Shown here one piece after another: positions 33,880 to 64,000 of a stretch of DNA of 64,000 bases (positions within the stretch are counted from its first letter, which is position 1; every line of letters starts with the position of its first letter). Under the pieces are notes generated by a model. That model ran no database searches. It was not told where the DNA came from and saw only the letters and a list, made by a program, of their open reading frames with translations. Both the position numbers and the translations under genes were made by a program. This DNA comes from Chlorokybus atmophyticus (Eukaryota > Plantae > Mesostigma and Chlorokybus algae): assembly GCA_009103225.1 (NCBI GenBank), contig RHPI01000026.1:147578-211577 (forward strand), in the 5' to 3' direction.

Positions 33880-36273
33880 TCAACGTGAGCCGTCCAGAAT
33901 GCGTCGTACTGTGTTCACAGACACGTTACCTGCGGAGCTGGCATTAGTCACATGCAAGGGACACACTCGCGCACATGCACCAACTGGCCAATAAGGCTTA
34001 CCCCCGCAGCTAATAACCACAGCGCTTTTGCCTTGCAACTCGTCCTTCAACTTCACTAGTGCGGCCACAGCAACCCCCGCTGCTCCTTCTATCACCTGCA
34101 TCAAAGAGTGTCTGCGCCGGAAGCAAACGCACACTTCTCTGCCTACACACAGAACACAGAACACTTACTTTGCTGTGATACTGAAGCACGACTCGCATCG
34201 CATAAGCTATCTCTTCTTCGTCAACAGTTACCCATCGGTCCACATACCTGCGCAAACAGTCTGAGCAGTAGCAAGTTGAATCTGAGCATGGATAGCAACT
34301 GTACGCACACTGAAACTTGCCTCTGACAGTATAACAAAGTACTGGAATCCGGCTCGATGCCGCCAGCAGTGCCATCCGAAAGTGTGTCTCCGTGTTCCAT
34401 CTCTACAATACGGCCAGCTTCAACAGACCTGCACGCTTGGTGCAAGCACATGTAAGGATGTTGTTCATGCCATTCGGGTTCAGACGCATGCGCTCACCTG
34501 CGCATGCAGTCGCTTGCTGCTGGCAGGCAGCCGACAACCTGTATGCTGGGGTCTACAGACTTCAGCAATGCGCTGATGCCACTTATAAGGCCTCCACCTC
34601 CAACCTATTGGCGTTTGTATGCATTCGCAACCAGCAATGGATGATCACACTCACAAAAAGAAGCCAAGTTAAACATATGTGTTGCTTACCGACACAAATA
34701 CGTAGTCCATCTGCCCGCGGGTCAGCTGCTGAAAAAGCTCGACAGCGATGGTGCCTTGCCCTATCAAGCGATGCCATAACCATACTGCACTTGCAGTGCA
34801 GCTTGCAGCTTTGATTGCTCACGAACCTGCGATGACGCTGTCATCATTGTACCTGTCATGAAAGTCTCCCTGAGTTGTCTGATGCATTCAATATAACAAA
34901 ACTGTAGCCAATCAAACGTACGGTGGCACATAGCACTTGGTCAAGGACTCGGCGTCGCGTCGAGCAGCCATCTCCAACTCTTTAAGAAATTACTCGTGTC
35001 AAGCTTGTCTCGCAGAATGTTGCAGTGCCAAACACGACGAGTACCTGACACCTCCAAGTCAACTTTCAACAGCTCTACACCATACAACCGCAACTTCTCC
35101 TCTTTGCCTGTAACGTAAAGCAAACATGTCATGTGCACGTACCCCTTTGTGTGTGTGGGTGTGCATCGGTGCGTGCGTGTGTCGGCTTGCGCACGCATGC
35201 GCACTCACGCACGCGCACTCACGCACGCACCTGCTTGGATGGTGGTGGGAACGTAAATTGTGCCTTTGACATTGGCTGTAGCTGGTAAGGACTTGAGAGC
35301 GCACGCCACTGCTAGACCATGGTTGCCAGATGACTGCCCAAATCAACATAGGACACTTGTTAGCCGACAGCAGACAGCTAATCAGAGATTGGACACGTAG
35401 CGGAGAGCAATAGTGATAGAAAACGTACGCACGTAACCACGCCGTTAGCCAGCTGCTCAGCGGGAGTGCACAGGAGCTTGTTCACAGCTCCTGCGGATGA
35501 CTACGCGTGAGCCAACATGTCAGTAACACACATGTACAGAGAACGGCAAGTCAGAAACACGCTCACCGCGCAGCTTGAAAGCACCGGTCAGCTGTTCTGA
35601 CTCCCACTTCATAAACACCTACCAGCAGAAAGAGCTGTCTTTGCAGCATCGTATGTGTACTTGCTTGTCTGCAGTCACGCATGTCGATTGCACATAACAA
35701 TCTCACCCTATCCGACAAGGTGCCAACAGCTAGTTTTGCCTTGCGGGCAACGTGGAACGCATGGGTAAGTGCAGCCCAAACTCCAGCCTCACCTTGCAAT
35801 TGCACAGCTTGCTGAGGTAAAGCGACTGCTCGACTGGCGTTTGGTGTACTGCACAAGAGGGTGACTCAGTCAGTGCAACCGTTCGGCAGGCTTAAGTGCT
35901 AGCAAGTCAAAAGGACCGCAACACATCGGAGACACTATGTCCACACGTGTGACGGGACATGAGATCAACATTGCTTGAACGAACTCTGACGAACAGCATC
36001 CCACAGCTGGGCGTGACTATTTTCGCTGTCTCTTTGCGTCTGCGGCGCTGAAGCAGAGGGTCCTGTGTGTACTTTGTTGGGTGCATGCTTGCCAATGCGG
36101 CAACAGTGACGGCACGCGCAAGCACTGCAACCATCATCACCGCGGTTAGGGTATAGGCCCCTACCATACTGCCTGATGCGTGCGGCCGCTTCCCGCACCA
36201 GCCGAGCCATGCCGTCGTCGTCTCCCGTGACAGTCGGCATCGGCCGCCCCGCCGCCTCCGCTGCCGCCTCCAT
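33880..36273 (-). CDS. PLP-dependent threonine dehydratase/serine racemase-like enzyme (multi-exon)
   Basis: KWESEQLTGAFKLRG (PLP lysine), SSGNHGLAVA, TLSDGTAGGIE, VIEGAAGVAVAA, VVISCGGN. Confidence 0.9.
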
Positions 36274-42538: not shown

Positions 42539-45084
42539 CCCCCCCCCCCCCCCCCCCTTTCTACCTCATTAACTGCATAGATTAACGCACGGTATGTAGG
42601 TTGGTAGGTTGGTGCCGGCAAGAGGTGAGTTTGTGATTGCTTTCGGGTGGTTGTTCACACACACATTTGTCAGGCGTGCACACATGTGGATGTGCATGCT
42701 TGCTTACACATACACGCGCATGCACACTGCACGCAACACTATGTGCACTCATACAGACACCTGGTCATCAACACCAACACTCATACTCACTTGCACACAC
42801 GTGTATACGCACACGCGCATGTGCACAAGTGCCAGCATGCTCTCTCTCTCTCTCTCTCTCTAAGCAGGCAGCGGGCAAGGACGGCTGCGACCAGCACCGA
42901 TGACGCCAGCGCCCTTCCCTGCACGCCCCTTCGACATGGGGCTCCAGCCAGGCGTGCACAGTCAGTCAGTGAGTCAGCCAGTCATTGCGCATGCCTGCGT
43001 GTGTGCATGCATGCATTGTCCTCTTTGTGCTATGTAACTCTTTGTTTGGGGCAAGTTCATGCCAGCCTGCCCCCCCTCGATCTGTCTTGCTCTTCTCTCA
43101 CGCTGTTAGTGCTTGGCCCGCGGCAAGCATGCAGCGGTGGCAAGCTCCTGAAATGCACCGCCTGTGAGTGTGCGCCGGGGAGCGCAATCCCACTTTCAGG
43201 TGTGCAGCTCGGCTCTGTGTGAGCGGCTGGTGGCTGCTCTGCTCCGTGCATGTGAGTGTGTTTGTTGTGTGTTGGTTGTATGTTGGTGGGAATGTGTACA
43301 TGTGCGCGTTCGCGCGTGTGTGTGCCCCCCCCCCACACCCTGGCAGACAAGATGGTGGTCAGCGGCGGACCCAGCACGCAAGCTGGCACCGTTCATTGGC
43401 GACACTGATTGATACTGGCCGAGGTTAGTCTGTGAGCGCACCCGGTCGTGTGCGCCCGTGCAGGCAAATATACACATATTCAAACTTCCAACTGCATGTG
43501 CACGCAGACTTGCGTTGGTGGGTGCACATGCAAACATCCGCGATTGCACACATGTACAAGCACATGTACGTGCATGCAGGCACGTACACGTGCACACACA
43601 TCTTCATGCACACACATGCGCACACAGTAGCTGATCATGCATGCGCGCTATCAGCGTTTGCTGTGCAGTAGCACATGCAAGACTGGGTGTGGTAGGTTTG
43701 TGGCCTGAGTGAGGGTACGGGTGTTATCACTGTGTATGTAAAGTAGGTAGCTGTGGGCATTGAGCTCTATCATGATGCTACGTTGCAGTCAGGGTGTGGG
43801 TGTGATTCTTGTAGGGTAGTAGCTGTGAGGATCCTGTAAAGTATTCGCATCGAATGCATTGTGAGATGTCATATGTGATCTGTGGTCATTTGATTTGCAC
43901 GATGTGATGTGATTGCCGTATTCTGCTTGGCTACACAAAGCGTTGGAAATGTACTTTTGTTATTGTGTGTTGTGATCATCAATGATTGAGCGTGTTGTGG
44001 TGTGTTGTTGCTGTGCGACGATGATGGGTGGCAGTGGTGCATGGTGACATATGCTCATGTGCTATGTGGCCCCTTTCAAGTCACAAACTGTGCAATACAT
44101 ACTGACACATGCATTACCTTCGCAGGCACCCCAATGCTCGTGCACATTTGCTCTATGTCATGACACTCCAACACGAGCACGTACACAAAGATATTCAGGA
44201 CAATGCACAAGTGGTACACACGCATACTATGTGTTGTTGGAGTGATACAAGCAGGCGGCATGAACTGCAAAGTGGCGCCGCGCTGGACAGTCACGGTACA
44301 ACCGGTTAACGCCGGTCAGTTTACTGAAGGTGCGGCGACGCAGTCGACCATTGCATCGGCGACCGAGTCAGCGCAGAGATTATACGTTACTGGGACCCGT
44401 GGTGTGCACGGGTCGCACACACTAGTAACCATCACATACTCAGCTGAGGTGCAGCAGCAGGGACTGGCGCGGATGGCAGGTGCGGCACCTGCCGTCGGCG
44501 AGAGGCCATTGGCTACGCAACTGTACTGCATTCCTGATCGGGGGGGGCTGACACAGACGCCATCATTCAGTGTGGGAGGCCAATGCAGCACAGCCGAGAG
44601 AGAGGAGAGCTGGCTTTTTCACATCGGCTGCCCAAGACTTGACCTGACCCCGTGCTTGCCATGATTAACACAGTGGTATCGGTCCGCAGCATTTGCTTGC
44701 TCAGCCGTGAAGGTATCTAAACTGCAGCAGGCATGGCACCACTTTCAGTCTCATCTCATCTTCTCTCTCGCCCAGCTGAAGTGTGGCCGCCTGGGCGGCC
44801 TTGCCCAAGGTGTGCTGCATCTCTGGCTCTCGTGCAGTCCATGCATGTCACCATGAGTGCGTGCGTACTTGCATGCTGTGTATGAGCGCAATTGCTGTCA
44901 ACAAGCAACATCTGCTCCCAAGGTGCATTACTGGACTCTTCTGTGTGCTACTAACGATTGACAGTACGGTTGCTCTCTCTGACTTTGTGTACCTGCGCTT
45001 ATTTAGCCAGAAGCACGATGAAGCCAAGCAGAGCTTCAGCGACAGCGGTACCCTAGAGGTGGCTTGTTGTCGTTATTGTGCCAC

Positions 45085-50195: not shown

Positions 50196-51408
50196 CGGCT
50201 ACAACGGCGGGCCCAACGAGGGCGATGAGCAGCAACACATAGAGCATGTTCAAGCCGCTAGGGATGACGCCGCCTCAGCCTCCCTGCATCCGAACGCACT
50301 GGAGATAGAATTCCTCAAAGATACACGGTACATTCCTGTGGACTTGTCTAACTCTATTGCACAAACGTGCGCTGTTCTATTGCACAAACGTGCGCTGTTC
50401 TAACGCTGCGGGCTGCAGTATCCTTTACATTAACCCCTGGTCCTGCCCTTGGAACGGCAACATGCAGCAGCGGTCGTGTCATCACGCACACATTTCATGT
50501 CCAGCCAGCGCTCCGATGTGACACACTCTCCACAGCGTTCCCCCATAGGTGTGCATTGCACATGCGATTAGTGGATGTGGGCTTGCTGTTGTGTGCTGGT
50601 AGGCTGTTTGGCTAATGACCTGCACTTGCTTACCTCCGTTGCCAGACATGGGAACACCTGAGACTGGCAGCGATGGAGCTCATTGGATAAGAGAGTACAG
50701 CACTGCCAGTTCAGTGAAGGTTTCACATACATCTTCGCGCATTGACTTGAACATTACATTTCAAGCACATAGTGAGCACAAAAACACATCAAGCACGCAC
50801 AGCCGTCAGGCTGCAGGCCTGACACATCCTCGTACACCGACGCTGATCACCAAAGGCCTGCGTTTACACACCCCAAACTGCACCCTAGAACACGTAGGCA
50901 GTCATGCGTAGGGAGCATGACACCAAGTTTCGTAAACATTCAAACTCGCACCACACCTATACACGAGCCCACACAACCACATACGAGCACACCTCATCAC
51001 CACACGCAGTCCACATCCATTTTATATGCAGGTGAGCCTGTGCGCACGTGCATGTTTGTCAAGCATGTACACGCACACAGGTGCACGCATGCATACACGC
51101 GCTTGTGCATGCTCGCACAACTTGCAACGCCACACCGGCTGCAGGACTCTCACAGCACTTGACCAACCTACAACGCACACCACACCACGAACCACCCTGC
51201 ATCCCTGCCCACCTGGCCTGCATCCCTGCCCCTGCTGTTATCTCGACTGTTATCTCAACCGCCCTGTGCCTGCACGTCAGGCTGATCCTGCCCCAACGTA
51301 TGATGACTACTCTCTTGCCGCAAACAAACGCCTTTACCTTGAGTCATTGCCGCTGTCATGTAGAGTCTGCTGTACAGTACAACAGGTGCAACCACCACGC
51401 GCGCTTCT

Positions 51409-51501
51409 GTACACTCCTGCCTCTCACCACCTGCGCCGCTTCCATCTCCGCACCTTGTGCGGAGATGGAAGCGGCGCAGGTGGTGAGAGGCAGGAGTGTA
51501 C
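51409..51501. ncRNA. Perfect 45-bp hairpin, candidate miRNA/siRNA precursor
   Basis: 51409-51453 is the exact reverse complement of 51457-51501, with a 3-nt loop (CTT). Confidence 0.5.
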
Positions 51502-52113
51502 GGCAAAGAACCTATCAGGTTGCTGAATACATTGAAGCTCCTCAGTAACATGCTGAAGAGCCGTTTCACCTGTACTAGCATTGCGCGGCATGGGGGTGTT
51601 GACAAAGTGTTGCAGTACTGGTATTGCAACACTTTGGTCAGCTGCCCCAAGTCCGAAGCTAAGGTGCAGCTGGGTGGTGTCAAGGAAGACAAGGGAATGG
51701 CATCCTGCGGAATGCCTCTAATGTTGGTCTCGGCAGCTAACCTCCACACAACTCCTGCCACCTGTGGTTTTCTTGACACTTTCTTAGCACTCTCTCCTTA
51801 CGTGTAAGCATGCCTGTTCAAAATACGAACGGTTCCCTCCCCTGTCCAACAGGCATGCATGCGTGCACGCGTGCGTGCGCATGTGCATGTTATTCAAAAC
51901 ATATCGGTTGGTGACAAAGACAGACCACACCGTTTTGTAGCCTGTACTCATTGCACCGTGAGTCACTGAATTTCCATTCATGCATCTGGTCAGCCGCATG
52001 GCACATACCGTGACAACACTACGAGGTTGACCGGTACACCATGAAAGACACTTTTGCGCAGGCTGTAATGCCATACCCACAGACCGGTGCGCGCACTGAG
52101 GTAATATGCCATA

Positions 52114-55367: not shown

Positions 55368-58300
55368 ATGGCGGCGGCGGAGGTGGGGAGGGTAGTGGAG
55401 GTGGACGGTATTGTTGGGAAGGAAGAGCAGATTCTGCATGGTGTTCACCTGCTGTACGGAGACAAGGTGGCTGAAGCGGAGGTGTACTTTGAAGCCAGAC
55501 AAGGGTGAGCTGCTCACATGCTTGCTGCTCTGCGTGCAACAGCATGCAGCTGCGATCGAGTCACGAGTTTAGTTCTTCCGTGGTAGATTGTACATTTAAA
55601 GGTTTGAAGACTTGCAAATGTACACGCTCACGCTGTTTGTGACTAGTACCAGTTCAATTGCACAGTGCATATCAAGCTGTCAAGTCTTTGCCTGTCAGCT
55701 GATATCACACAAAAGATCTCTTTGTCACAGTGTCAGTATCGTTTGTTTCCCAACTGCCATCTGTTAGACCAAGTCAGAATCGTACATGTTGGCGCACAGT
55801 GGGGTGTTATGCATAAGTTGCAGCTGCTCTAGCGCTCGTCAAGACGAGCACCCGCACTCCTTCCCCCTGTGGTTCCGTTCCTCTCTAGGCAGGGTTGAAG
55901 TTGCTTGTACGAACAAAAGGAGACAGTTACGGGTGGAACGACAGCATTCAGGTCAGCACTACGTTTGGTTGAGACAATGTGGACTCGTTGTCATGCAGGT
56001 TGGGAACTCCGTTTGCTCTGCACTATGCGGAGGTGGCGACATACAAGGCGTTGCTGTCGTGCGTAGACGACGATGTCGACAAAGCCATTGGGCTCCTGCG
56101 CGCGGCTGACGAGCGAGCTGCTTCTCAGGTATAGAGTATGCACTTGACTCTGAGGGACACACCTTAGAATATGCTGACACTTCACGCTGAAAGGCCAGTG
56201 CGAGTTCTTCTTCTACAGCGAGCCGCATTGTCTCCTACTTCAGAACCAGTAAGGACAGCGCAGCGGATGCTGAGGAAGCTGCCCTCTCCAAATTGGAGGC
56301 GCACTGCATACAGGCTGAGACCCATCTCATGGTTGGTCTGCTGATGCTTATCAAGGCCAGTGAGTCATGGACAAGCATCCCAAAGGTGCGTTGCGCGCTC
56401 GAGTTCACAAGCATACATACATACATGCACACATACACACGTACACATACACGCATACATGCGTACCGACAGACACACAGGCATACGCGCACGCGCACAC
56501 GCGCACGTTTCGTGTTCAAACATTGTGTGCACTGCTAGGCCAGTTACAGCCTGCGGAAGGCATGGCTTTCGTACCAGAAGTGTTTGCAGTCGCTTGAACA
56601 GTTGCGCACACCGTCCAGGAGCAGAGAGATGGTTGCTGGAGCTGTGCACTTTGGAGTAAGCTGGCTTGCTTTGTATACTGCAGGTTGTATGCAAGTGGCA
56701 CTCGCAATGTATTGGTGGTCTTGATGAGGCCGCTCGTAGCGGTTGCAGGCTTGACTGACAGCATTGCACACGCGCGTGTGTGCCTCTTGTGCATATGGGA
56801 GTTTTGTTAGCAGTTCATTCTTACGGACAGTAATGTTCTTTTACAGGTTGGCCTGTTCAACATGTTGGTGTCCCTCATACCTCCCGGGCTGATTACATTT
56901 GCGGAGTTTCTCGGTTTCTCGGCGGATCGTGACAAGGGCCTCTCTCTGCTTCAGAAGTCTGCCAGCAGCAACTCGTCGCGCGCATTTGTGGCCGCCTTTA
57001 TGCTAATGCAATGTTAGTGGAAGTTCAGCGCGTGCAAGGCTGCAAGTTGCCCATTGCGATGAAAGGCATTACCTTATTTGCCTCTTGCCTTGCAGACCAC
57101 ACAGTCCTATCATCCTTTCTGCCGTTTGATCGCGCGCACTGCGCAGAGACAGAGCGGTTGCTGGCCTCCGTGCCAGCTGTCATGCAGCAGTCCTCCGTAG
57201 TTAAAGTAAGTTCTAGCTGTTGTTGAGGCAGACAGAGCAGTGGCCATCTCAAGTCCACAGCTCACGGCCGCCTTCATGGCTAGCTTGGTCACAGAGTTAG
57301 TGCCATGCACATGCATACACAGATCTGGGGTTGCTGGCTTCCTCGGACTTGTGCATTTGCAGGTTATGGCGGTGCGGTTGGCTAGGTACAAGAGTCAACC
57401 AGACCAAGCACTTGCGCTAGCCAGGTACAGAACCTCATATGGTGGTGAATCAGATGCACAGTCAAAAGTCGCTAGCGTTGATGGGGGATGTGCATGTCTG
57501 CAGGGTGGAGTCACCAGCTGAGCTGGTGGTGCCGCAGCTGAAGCACGTGCGCATATACGAGCTGGCATGGTGTGCTTTGGCGAAGAAACGGTATGATGAA
57601 GCCGCACAGGCATGTGATGTACTCATCAAGGAAAGCTCGTGGTCAAAAGCCTTCTCCGCATATTTCAAGGTGAGCTTCTCATGAATAATAGATAAAATTA
57701 ACATGTTAGGATGCGCTGTAAGTATGGTCAGGCAGAGTATTGTTTGCTGGCTTGTCATGTCCTCTGGTTCTTCCAGGCGTGCTGTTTGTGGCAACTGGAC
57801 AGCATTGGTGAAGCCAGGCGTGTTGCTGCCACGGTCAGTGGCCTGGTGAAAAGGGCAAAGGCTCCCATTGAGCACATTGCTGACAAGAGAGCCAAAGCCA
57901 TGCTGAACTCCGTGCCTCTCTTCCCTGCACTGGAGGTAGACTTGGTTGGTTGCGGTCACATATTCACTCTTGACATAACATCATTGGTACTCAGGCTTTA
58001 CTTGTCGCAGCTTGCTTCTTTTTGGAACGTGTTTCAGCAGATGTCCCGCACCACGCTGCAAGAGCATGTTACAGACATCGGGGCCGCTCTCACTTCAAAG
58101 GGGGCTTCGATTCCGGGCCGCAAGGAGGAGTGGAGCGTCAACGATGAGATGTACTGTCGCTACCTGCGTGGCGTGTGCTTCCGCTGTTTGGATCAACCGC
58201 AAGAAGCGCTGCTAGATTTGCGCGCTGTTGTGGAGCACAAAGGGTCTGCCCTGGAGAAGTACCTTGTGCCCTGGGCCACATACGAGTACGGGTCTCTGCT

Positions 58301-59416: not shown

Positions 59417-62400
59417 TTACGCTACAGCATAAGCAGGGGTTGGGCGCTGCGTTGACGCATACTTCCTTGTTATATACCTGGACCAAGCACCAAGCCATGC
59501 CAACATCAGCATCATAGCATGGAATCACAGAAAGGACACAACTAGGACACAACTATGCATGACAAAAGACCCTACCGGAAGAAATCGCGCCACAGCAGCT
59601 CAAACACAAGCCAGTTCAGCCCTCCTCTGTTGCTGTCTTCAGCAGAGGATGCGACTGCGCCGCCGGCTGCCTTCAGGTCTTCGTACATCCTTCGGGGAGA
59701 GAGGCAGCCCATGGCCAGCCATGGCGATATCTTGCACGAGAAGTTAGCGCCATACTGCTTGTCAGCGGCCAAGCTGTCCTTGGCGCCACGCATGGCACTG
59801 ACAGCATCAGCCACAAAAGTGCGAAGGCGTTCTAGAGCCTCTTTCTCCCCTCCAATCAGCGAAGGGGCTCCTGCGGTGTCCTGGTACAGCATGCTGCCAA
59901 GCGTGAGTTTGCGTTGCTGCATACGATAAGGCGCAGTCATCGCTGATGGTTAAAGCACCAAATTCAGTCACGCATCCCGTCATGTGGACAAGACTCACAA
60001 GCGGGAACTGTTACTTTATCATCACTGTTTCTTGTTGGTGTGTGCATGCCTACATGACACTTCGCCACCAGCAAAGTACCTGACCAACGGATGTTGAAGA
60101 CAGGCCAAGCTGGTCCAATGTAGGAATGTCTCCCAACTCAAGAGATCCTTGGGCAGGAAGCCGTTTCAACTCGGCGACTGGAACTGTCTTCCTGATGGCA
60201 ACGTTTTGCACCTGCTCGCGGAAGGCGCCATAGTTCGATGGCATGTCATTCAGCTTGAACGGTAGATCATCCAAATGGTAGAGCGTGCTGCCCCAAGAAG
60301 CCTTGAACTCCACGCCAATCTTCTTGAGGACGGCTTGCACCTGATGTTGATTGGCAGTTACAAGCGTGCAGAGGTAGACCATGCCAATGACTGCCAAACC
60401 GCGGGGTGAACTTGCAACAATTACCTGTTCCTCTGCTTGCACATCCTCACGTGTGACTTCCTGGTGAGTGTACACAGCCTCAGCTCCAACCTGGCAAGGA
60501 AACAATTCAAACAAAAAGAACTCCAAGCGAATTGGAATTGAAATTTGCATAAACTGTCAGGGACGCTGCCCACGATGAACAATGCTGCCATGAACCATCA
60601 CATAAACAATATTTGCTCGTGTAAGTGACATTACAAGAGACAAAGAAGCCAATGGCCCCTCACAACTACAATACTGACGCTGCAATGTGTACTGTAGCGT
60701 AAAGTTGTGTGCACATGATAGCAAACTACAACGTGTGACTTTGCAAATTTGACCCGCATCTGACCTGGCGCCTTGATGCACCACAGCCATGATGCGCGAC
60801 TAACTGTTGCTGAAAATGACTTACTTGCTTGGCAATGTCTGCCAACACCTCTTCAGGCTTGCCAATACGCACGACAAGGTCGGTTCCATGCTGCTGCAGG
60901 CTTGCGCGCAAGTCTGAGACACACTCGCGCAAAAACTTGGCTCGATACGGGCCGGTCTTGTCAAAACCGGAGGCAGACTTGCCATAGTCCCGTGGGTCGA
61001 ATATATACAAAGGTACTACAGAAGAGGCCTCCTCATTCGCATGCAGAAAGGCCTCATTGTCATGGACGCGCAGGTCGTTGCGGAACCACGAGATGACAGC
61101 ACCACGCATGCCTCCAGCACCGGGAGGACGCCTGCTCTTGCGGCCACTGCACAGAGCAATAGCACCAGCATGCTTGCTTAGAATGCGTGCGGCTTGACAT
61201 GGGCAGGCTAGTAACTAGGTGTTTGGGTGGTTGATGCAGCTAAGGTGTGATAGCATACGAAACAATACTTTGGCTTTTGCTGATGACTCACGCAGGAGTG
61301 TGTTTAGGGTTACGACTCATAGCATGTCACTTACCTGTCCTTGTCAAGAGATAGGTCGTTGAACAGAGAGATGTTGGCTTGCTTCAACTCGAAGCTTGGT
61401 TTGTCCATTGTCAGCGCTGACACGGTGGCAAACTTCACAGATAACGACGACATGTTGGCCACTGCTGAGTTACCAGCAGACTTGCTCGGCATGCTGGGTG
61501 CTTGCTTCTTTACAATCTGCTGCGCAATGGATGCCTTCAACTTGCTCGCTGGTGCACGGATAGCGCTTGGCGCACCCAAAGACCGTGATGCCAGCGACAT
61601 GGACGCAAATGGCAGCGCAGACGCAATGGCACAGAACTGCGGCTGAACTGCCAAGGCGGAAACCTCTTGTGCGCACGAAGTTGGAGCACTAACAACGGGT
61701 GCCAACTGAATGTTAGCAGTGTGCTTGGGAGCGGCAACTTGTGCAGCACAAAGCTGAGCGCTCTGCATGCTGCGCATGTTTGCGTCCATGACCATGTTAA
61801 ACTGGGAGAAAGCGGCAGAAGCTGGGCGCTGAGCTCGCAGATCAACGCGTTTCGTGACCATGAATCTGGTGTTGTCCGCACCCTGCGCAGTGAGGGCTTC
61901 ATGGAGCTGAGCGGCATCCTCCGCGACACTCAACATGGCTGGAGGCTGCTTCCGCAGACAAGTGGAGCAAGCTGAAAAGATGCGCAACTGCAACAACAAG
62001 CAAGTGAGTAGGACTGCGACTGTGTTACACAACTCCAGCATTTAGAAAGGTTTACGAACTTAGTACTCAATACTTGTGTAGCAAGTACACATCGTGCACT
62101 TGCATACAACCGGTCACTCATGCATTTGCCTCACCTGGAGCGCAGACAGCTGCTCAGCAGCCTCCTCCTGTGTCATGCTATCAGCGTCAACAACGAGCAC
62201 TGCCTTCTGCCAGACCCGCTCTCCAAATGCACGGCTGATGCCGTTGATCACATTCTCGTTGCTATCAGCAAGGGAGCATGCAATGACGACCGCATCAACA
62301 GCTGTCTTTCGCCTGCACAGATCGTTGGCAACAGCAGCGACCTCCGCAGCAGTTGTGAGCTGGCCAGCCGCCAGAACAGTCGCGCCATCTTCCGCTGTGT

Positions 62401-62809
62401 GCAGCTGCAATTGCCCCTGGCTGACACTCTGCAACAAAAACAGATGACTTTGGCAGGTGTGTGAGTGTGTTTGCAATCAAAGCAGCGGCGGCCAGCATCC
62501 AATGCACATCATGTCAACAACATGCACAACATGTCAACAACAAACAGAGCACACTCTCATCTGAGCATGTGCTTCCGAAATGGTGTGCTCAATATCAAAA
62601 TCACAACCTCATCGACTTGCGTAAACACCGTGCAGGCAAAGGCCAGAGTGCTGCATAGATGAAGCGCAAGCTGACTCCATCAACTACTCCGCTGTGTGAC
62701 GCACCTGCGCAGGCTGCTTGCCGAGGAGAGCGCGCACGGCGCCGGTTGTGTCCGCGCACCCAGCGCCGAGCACGAGGGCGCTGCTGAGCTGGGCCTCCCG
62801 CAGCGCCAT
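59417..62809 (-). CDS. PHR2: Plant-type PHR2 photolyase/cryptochrome-family protein with a ~365-aa N-terminal extension
   Basis: WFRNDLRVHDNEA, GFDKTGPYRAKFL, WGSTLYHLDDLPF, GGEKEALERL, YGANFSCKISPWLAMGCLSPR. Terminates soon after WLVFELLWRDFFR|YITRKY, lacking the rest of the FAD domain as in plant PHR2. Upstream exons 62705-62809, 62135-62428 and 61335-61987 splice in frame. Confidence 0.88.
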
Positions 62810-63069
62810 GACGAGCGACACCGACGCCAATGCCAACGACAGCACCGCCGCAGCACACCAGCACAGCCAACAGCAGGAAACCATGCGGATGCTTTTCTGT
62901 GACGCAAACAGCGTTGATTACAGCTGCATACTTCTGAACACGTTCAATTACAGCTCAAGACACACCAGATAACGATGATATCTTCCTGCACTCTCTTTTT
63001 TGTAAGGATATCTGCTTTCTAGATACATACTAGCCGTCTTGTTTCACACGGGGTGCCGGCGTGGACAGC

Positions 63070-63588
63070 ATGGCGGAGGTGGGAGGCGGCGGCGGTGCCG
63101 GCGATGGTGATGGGGAAGCTGGGAAGGCGCAGAGGGAACCCGGTTCCACGGTTAGGAAGCTGGTGCAGCACCTGGACGCGTTCCGGGGCGCCAGCGTGGA
63201 GGAGCACAAGTCCTGATTGAAAAACACCCTGAGCAAGGTGCATGCCCTTCGCGGAGTTGCGCACAACCTGTTGCTTCACACACGCCATGCATGAAAACTT
63301 ACAGCTACGCGGCAAGTACACAAACATTAATTATCGCAAGCATGCCCAGAGATCAGCATGTGTACGTTTGGGTGCACCTTTGTTTTGTTGATTGCCTATC
63401 AATACATCATTCCATGTTATCTTGGTTGCTGTATTGGTACTCATGTTCTGCACTAAACCTTTGGGCGTTTGTTGTGATTGGTACAGCTGTTCAACCTTGG
63501 CAAGGCAAAGCCAGTAAAGAAGAAGGGGGACGTTGTGCCGCACGTCCACAGTGTGCTCAGGATCAGGGCGCAGCGCGGTTTGCAACAA
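63070..63588 (+). CDS. Small spliced protein with an in-frame TGA, candidate selenoprotein (3' end unresolved)
   Basis: Exon 63070-63237 reads MAEVG...LDAFRGASVEEHKS(TGA 63214-63216)LKNTLSK with a GTGCAT donor. Exon 63487-63588 continues in frame (LFNLGKAKPVKKKGDVVPHVHSVL...) to a GTAAGC donor. Confidence 0.6.
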
Positions 63589-63840
63589 GTAAGCAGACAA
63601 GCAACTTTACATTTTGACATCAACATGTAGCTTGTCGTCTTATTCTTTCTTCTGTAGTCTCGCATCTTGTCTATCGTCCCTCTCTGCTGTCGTGTCACAA
63701 CATGCATGACAACTGCTGCCAAAGGACAGGCTCTGTCAGTACACACCATACACCTGTGCTGCCCAACATGTACGGCAGGTTGTTACTCACACTGCTGCTG
63801 TTGTACTCAGGCTAAGCATTCATGACATCTGCTTCCTATT

Positions 63841-63917
63841 CGCGGTTAGAATTCGTGACGGACATTCGCCACAACCACTGATTGTGGAGGCCATGACCTG
63901 ATACTCGGCTATCTGTG
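63841..63917 (+). promoter_or_regulatory. SECIS-like stem-loop (form 2, GUGA core)
   Basis: Core TGAC 63856-63859 against TGAT 63899-63902. Imperfect 11-nt helix II, unpaired ACAA 63871-63874, mini-stem CCAC/GTGG, and helix I 63841-63849 with 63909-63917. Confidence 0.5.
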
Positions 63918-64000
63918 GATAGGAACCGCTCGCTAGATTGGACTCTCACTTAATGTATTGACAGACTTCTCACGGCGTTGTTGAGACTGAGTCTTGTTCT

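Follow-up and report, generated by a model that had tools for sequence, protein, structure and literature searches.

Selenoprotein families confined to a narrow lineage, with no known domain, have come to light through searches that start from the SECIS element. Plasmodium Sel1-4 are lineage-restricted orphan selenoproteins found in this way. SymSEP of Symbiodinium is another, likewise restricted to its lineage and recovered SECIS-first (PMC7539508). The Chlorokybus gene described here resembles these orphans: it has a short open reading frame (ORF) with an in-frame UGA, its 3' UTR contains a SECIS-like element, and it has neither a known domain nor relatives beyond a narrow lineage. The difference is one of breadth: the orphan families are backed by several members that can be aligned at the selenocysteine (Sec) column, or by labelling data, whereas the Chlorokybus gene is represented by one species and by fragments from one sister strain.

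For the RNA element, the closest described class is the green-algal SECIS. In green algae the SECIS core usually reads GUGA_AA, and this form is common in Chlamydomonas and Ostreococcus (PMC3473315). The Chlorokybus hairpin has the parts of this class (RF00031): a GUGA/UGAU quartet, an 11-nt helix II, the AA, a form-2 mini-stem, a long helix I and a site in the 3' UTR. It departs from the class in three respects: the AA lies 13 nt past the last 5' base of the quartet, a gap among the longest usually seen; helix II carries two mismatches and a bulge; and the profile score is below threshold.

Two further comparisons concern the protein and its annotation. SELENOK and SELENOS are small, largely disordered and basic, with one Sec outside a thioredoxin-fold CxxU, and the predicted Chlorokybus product is like them in this. 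In SelK and SelS, however, a transmembrane helix comes first and Sec stands at the very C-terminus, whereas in the Chlorokybus product it would be central (residue 49 of 94) with no hydrophobic segment; sequence similarity to SELENOK or SELENOS was not found. The locus also resembles mis-annotated selenoprotein genes, in that the UGA has been removed from the public model by an unsupported intron boundary, a classic annotation artefact. Such genes are normally spotted by homology to a known family, and the Chlorokybus gene has none.

Chlorokybus possesses the machinery for Sec insertion. The earlier note on this DNA, which proposed an unrecognised selenoprotein from the letters alone, had counted a lack of tRNA-Sec, SBP2 and EFSec as an argument against itself; all three are present, together with PSTK, SecS and SPS, in the Chlorokybus genome and 1KP transcriptome (Liang et al. 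2019; PMC6627142). That study credited the alga with three selenoproteins, on homology only, and the small count was taken as part of a trend of losing selenium use toward land plants (PMC6627142). A 2020 survey of algal selenoproteomes left Chlorokybus out.

The locus is a small, well-expressed three-exon nuclear gene with an in-frame UGA at codon 49 of its mRNA. It lies near the end of the window, by which we mean the whole 64,000-nt stretch of contig RHPI01000026.1 that was analysed, and we think it somewhat more probable than otherwise that it encodes a 94-residue selenoprotein without known relatives. The gene has the following features.

63070..63072, plus strand: start codon ATG in the context agcATGg, the sole in-frame ATG; presumably present in the mRNA
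63072..63237, plus strand: RNA-covered part of exon 1 (X1 record 2 and X2 record 5, zero letter differences)
63196..63197, plus strand: donor GT of the public 80-residue model (CAGC/GTGGAG), which skips the TGA (model sequence against RNA joints)
63214..63216, plus strand: in-frame TGA, codon 49, proposed Sec codon; present in X1, X2 and X4 contigs
63238..63486, plus strand: intron 1, 249 nt, GT..AG; joint in X1, X2 and X4
63487..63588, plus strand: exon 2, which carries on the frame of exon 1 for 34 codons (sequence and RNA contigs)
63589..63810, plus strand: intron 2, 222 nt, GT..AG; joint in X1 and X2, equivalent joint in X4
63811..64000 and at least 130 nt beyond the window, plus strand: exon 3, comprising four codons, the stop codon and the 3' UTR (RNA contigs)
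63823..63825, plus strand: second TGA in the frame, taken as the putative true stop, with the SECIS core 29 nt downstream; conserved in X4

RNA contigs fix the structure of the transcript. Four public RNA runs (X1 to X4) contain the locus, and we aligned their assembled contigs to positions 61001-64000. The best contig, from X1 (517 nt, word depth 856), begins at 63072 and runs 58 nt past position 64000; the X2 contig (546 nt) runs 130 nt past it. Neither differs from the window by a single letter, the TGA at 63214-63216 included. Both are joined at 63237/63487 and at 63588/63811, each time across a GT..AG intron, and the mature mRNA therefore keeps this TGA. Splicing of intron 1 is efficient, as judged from the depth of an unspliced contig (X1 record 3), 4.3 against 856 for the spliced form. 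The complete frame is 94 codons long with one internal TGA, its last four codons falling in exon 3 ahead of the TGA at 63823-63825, and a search of the spliced RNA for another ATG-initiated ORF of any size found none.

This is the arrangement that the earlier note had read from the sequence: an ATG at 63070, 48 codons, a TGA, seven more codons up to a GT donor, an exon 2 in the same frame and a product of about 95 residues. Its coordinates were correct, the RNA junctions bear out exon 2, and the contigs carry TGA, with neither TGG nor TGC, at 63214-63216. At the 5' end, the X1 contig begins at 63072, the last letter of the ATG, and the AUG is presumably included in the mRNA. Assemblies commonly miss the first 10-20 nt of transcripts, and the true end of exon 1 is probably a few tens of nucleotides upstream of 63072. 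A TATA-like AGATACATA stands upstream of the ATG, at 63021-63029.

The public annotation of this gene avoids the TGA. A protein search with the exon-1 ORF gave a single match, an 80-residue model (P0001; EukProt, JGI Chlat1 model 7102, Chrsp57S06787); the strain of the JGI Chlat1 genome, CCAC 0220, is now called C. melkonianii (PMC8611356). In the model, codons 1-42 run straight into exon 2, followed by the four codons of exon 3, and the donor chosen drops 14 codons, the TGA among them. The joint from donor 63196 is in no RNA contig of the four runs, and the donor looks weaker than five RNA-supported donors nearby (GTGCAT, GTAAGC, GTAAGT, GTGAGG and GTGCGT). Gene predictors routinely make such introns to dodge in-frame stops. 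The JGI predictor nonetheless took both sides of the TGA, independently, as coding in one frame. Even if the selenoprotein reading is wrong, the gene model is corrected: the real mRNA cannot encode the annotated 80-residue protein.

The 45 open codons that follow the UGA, across two junctions, look coding, as if translation continued in frame. Their GC content by codon position is 0.57/0.34/0.71 (GC3 minus GC2, 0.38), and the likely real exons in the window stand at about 0.57/0.42/0.60. Past the second TGA the 3' UTR is flat, at 0.47-0.51, so that codon periodicity stops at that TGA. A codon log-likelihood ratio trained on 2,535 codons from the window's long ORFs comes to +5.1 over the 45 codons; true coding windows average 3.2. 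Among 89,064 other 45-codon windows used as a null, 26% are free of stops and 1.4% are both stop-free and equally coding-like, the latter being an upper bound because the null includes unmasked real exons.

A hairpin with the architecture of a form-2 SECIS sits in exon 3, in the 3' UTR and not in an intron. Its parts are these.

63835..63923, plus strand: GUGA-type form-2 SECIS-like hairpin (Rfam SECIS_1 alignment, fold and constrained-fold null)
63835-63849 with 63909-63923, plus strand: helix I, 14 bp (fold)
63855-63858 and 63899-63902, plus strand: 5' GUGA and 3' UGAU, with the quartet at 63856-63859 / 63899-63902 (fold)
63860-63870 with 63889-63898, plus strand: helix II, 8 pairs, 2 mismatches, 1 bulge
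63873-63874, plus strand: unpaired AA, within an unpaired ACAA
63875-63878 with 63884-63887, plus strand: mini-stem CCAC/GUGG, 4 bp, with a 5-nt loop (fold)

Both profile alignment and folding recover this element. The Rfam SECIS_1 model (RF00031) matches over its full length at 63845-63913 with 16.9 bits, well below the gathering cut-off of 35, and its quartet, helix II, unpaired AA and helix I are all present. The G before the UGA lowers the score because the Rfam model is dominated by animal sequences. Folded without constraint, 63835-63925 forms the same long hairpin with an internal loop (-29.1 kcal/mol, z -2.2). The fold that the earlier note had described, a form-2 SECIS with a quartet, helix II, AA, mini-stem and helix I, is thus a real structure, and it lies in the 3' UTR. 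No sequence similar to the hairpin occurs elsewhere in the window, and we rejected an origin as a repeat or MITE on that ground. A whole-window Rfam scan gave no second SECIS or other calibration and returned mostly microsatellite- and miRNA-like noise.

How often would chance produce such an element? A loose SECIS pattern has 6 matches in the window against 7.65 expected from Markov simulations; since the bare pattern is this common, a list of motifs is by itself weak evidence. When the quartet was forced open and helices I and II were required, the 63835-63923 hairpin was the sole pattern match in the window to survive. The same constraints applied to 26 Mb of simulated strand left 126 fold-consistent decoys, 6 of which were as stable, or 0.23 per Mb of strand. 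From the profile side, the E-value of SECIS_1 is 8.7 when 4227 families are searched over 2 kb, which becomes about 0.002 for SECIS_1 alone, or about 0.5 chance matches per Mb of single strand. The two estimates agree on a chance of roughly 1e-4 per 300-nt UTR; over the whole genome, chance alone should yield about 40-80 hairpins as good as this one.

The end of the frame falls precisely where it should in a selenoprotein gene. UGA-49 is 167 nt upstream of the SECIS core in the mRNA, and the second UGA, at 63823-63825, precedes the core by 29 nt and the base of helix I by 9 nt. Eukaryotic recoding has a minimum UGA-SECIS distance of roughly 50 nt, which UGA-49 exceeds by an ample margin. At 29 nt, the second UGA would escape recoding and serve as the stop.

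We propose SECIS-directed recoding as the mechanism. The GUGA-type form-2 element in the 3' UTR would recruit SBP2 and eEFSec carrying Sec-tRNA-Sec, UGA-49, 167 nt upstream, would be read as selenocysteine, and translation would go on for 45 codons until the second UGA, too near the core to be recoded, ended it. The predicted product has 94 residues, no cysteine and one Sec, with an acidic, Gly-rich N-terminal half and a basic C-terminal half. The mechanism is a known one; the protein would be new and apparently restricted to its lineage.

Both TGAs and the length of the frame are kept in a diverged strain, X4. The identity of X1 and X2 to the window fits two C. melkonianii data sets, SAG 2609 and the 1KP run. 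X4 is diverged: its intron 1 is swapped for 208 unalignable letters, and few exons of the neighbouring gene reach 95% identity to the window. It is nevertheless identical to the window over 30 nt before and 28 nt after junction 1, TGA included, and has two differences in the 29 nt that precede junction 2. The first 8 nt of exon 3 (63811-63818) differ wholly, changing AKH to GDL, and the next 22 nt, with the second TGA, are identical. Judged from this alignment, the C-terminal residues are not strongly conserved. The 8-nt swap may be a shifted acceptor that keeps the frame. The 2021 study behind X4 dates its Chlorokybus species splits at 24-76 Ma (PMC8611356), and we infer that X4 belongs to another of the species in that study. 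Of 17 31-mers sampled from exon 3, three are present in X3 and three in X4; the cross-species data are fragmentary.

The predicted protein has no recognisable relatives and no recognisable fold. Our queries were the exon-1 and exon-2 pieces and the 80-residue model, which together cover all but 14 of the residues. Among 5.8 billion clusters they found no homologue besides P0001, the mis-spliced model of the same gene. An exhaustive HMMER search with P0001 against 1.84 billion representative proteins returned itself and P0002 only; the latter (E 9e-10) is a bacterial protein in which eight identical Flg_new_2 repeats sum weak matches, and we rejected it as spurious. Pfam offered no family at E up to 1, the best protein-atlas score was a meaningless 0.72, none of 600 pattern matches in JGI metagenomes was confirmed, and exact-sequence look-ups of the 48-residue ORF, the 51-residue ORF and P0001 in assembled contigs returned nothing.

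The earlier note had looked to homologues with Cys or Sec at the codon-49 column for support. None turned up in any protein search, and the searches gave no homologue at all; with none, that column cannot be compared, which is a matter of missing data and not of a contrary residue. The note's view that the product resembles no known selenoprotein family, and carries no CxxU or UxxC pair, was upheld: Pfam, HMMER and the atlas gave no similarity to GPx, TrxR, Msr, SelK/S/T/W/H/M/O/U, MSP or others.

The frame's composition suggests a small protein of two contrasting halves. The N-terminal half has a pI of 5.5, and the strongly basic C-terminal half one of 11.8. An AlphaFold single-sequence model of P0001 (pLDDT 65) places helices at residues 26-38 and 60-79, the rest being of low confidence, and is unsuited to a fold search. 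The residues around the UGA (KS-U-LKNT) invite comparison with the LKKT motif of thymosin/WH2; we rejected this likeness, the helix-to-motif spacing being too long and Pfam blank. A further possibility, to which we give slightly less than an even chance, is that the gene represents a selenoprotein family found in Chlorokybus alone. Such a family would lack Cys-containing relatives altogether, and its small, mostly disordered protein, half acidic and half basic, would carry a single Sec near the middle. As to its role, our guess by analogy is a single-Sec redox or thiol-reactive protein that would act through an intermolecular selenenylsulfide, as has been proposed for other Sec proteins lacking CxxU.

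The likeliest alternative is that UGA-49 is a plain stop. The product would then be a 48-residue acidic peptide, the frame behind it a relic of a longer ORF or chance, and the hairpin chance or the bearer of another role, for example in mRNA stability. Most real selenoproteins have Cys homologues, and an orphan protein with none suits a plain stop, as do a sub-threshold SECIS score, the commonness of the bare SECIS pattern and C-terminal residues that vary between strains. Yet a plain stop needs a hairpin of about 1e-4 chance in the right place and on the right strand. It must further assume that a frame both open and coding-like, as in no more than 1.4% of windows, happens to end 9 nt ahead of that hairpin. 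For a random TGA-terminated gene, such an extension (at most 0.014) together with such a placed hairpin (about 1e-4) is expected at about 1e-6. An old nonsense mutation would account for the coding signal but still requires the hairpin by chance. The TGA and the frame also persist in X4 despite the diverged intron, and the mRNA is abundant with two exon junctions downstream of the supposed stop. By the NMD rule, a stop upstream of exon junctions should trigger NMD; if the rule holds for this gene, a plain stop at UGA-49 would sit poorly with that abundance. We regard the plain stop as unlikely, while giving it appreciable weight.

Two other accounts seem to us far less probable. One keeps the annotated 80-residue product as the real one, made from a minor isoform that uses donor 63196, and treats the abundant TGA isoform as unproductive. 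The public model does have that structure, and rare variants are lost in assembled contigs, but the joint is absent from the contigs of all four runs, its donor is weaker than the five RNA-supported ones nearby, and stop-avoiding introns are something that predictors routinely invent; we consider this isoform very improbable. Barely less so is a transcript that is non-coding, or a UGA-49 read through by a near-cognate tRNA without Sec. The missing homologues, low atlas recognition and low-confidence structure model would agree with it. Against it stand coding periodicity and codon usage in both halves and in one frame, as well as a good start context, and the UGA-U context is, to our knowledge, not a known readthrough motif. 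The organism also has a dedicated Sec system (PMC6627142).

Sec decoding of UGA-49 is, in our judgement, the best explanation of the locus. Its prior weighs against it, since selenoproteins make up roughly 1-2 per thousand genes here. Set against the chance expectations above, the rough odds favour Sec decoding several-fold. We place it only moderately above even, since the uncertainty of the model and the missing comparative test both call for a discount on those odds. The selenoprotein proposed in the earlier note thus stands in part: the mRNA structure, the TGA and the SECIS architecture were borne out, whereas the homologue column gave nothing to compare and the SECIS profile score stayed under its cut-off.

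If the gene does represent a family found in Chlorokybus alone, a selenoprotein arose, or diverged past recognition, in a subaerial streptophyte lineage otherwise thought to be shedding selenium use. If Sec decoding is correct, selenoprotein counts based on homology would be underestimates, and there would be new Sec proteins beyond the redox families sought by profile searches. The gene would also offer a natural UGA/SECIS cassette of streptophyte origin, compact at about 600 nt of mRNA, in which Sec recoding could be studied close to the plant lineage.

Other features of the window merit a brief record. A divergent neighbour gene at 61001-62884 on the minus strand is spliced, with introns at 61147-61334, 61988-62134 and 62429-62704. 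Single RNA contigs (1408 nt in X1, 2358 nt in X2) link its 5' exons to an exon with a photolyase domain, in the ORF at 60726-61109, where the DNA-photolyase domain starts (Pfam PF00875, E 8e-29); its upstream exons have no Pfam match. Translation from its start at 62884 gives a hydrophobic, signal- or transit-like N-terminus. Elsewhere, at 51409-51501, about 45 bp of perfect inverted repeat enclose a 4-nt loop. The repeat lies inside a 174-codon minus-strand ORF (51255-51779) and matches miRNA precursors on both strands, though below threshold (MIR1219, 62 bits, cut-off 79). Microsatellite-like hairpins at 43541-43614, 51022-51098, 56392-56510 and 35148-35227 give weak mir-297/mir-466 matches on both strands, which are almost certainly simple-repeat noise.
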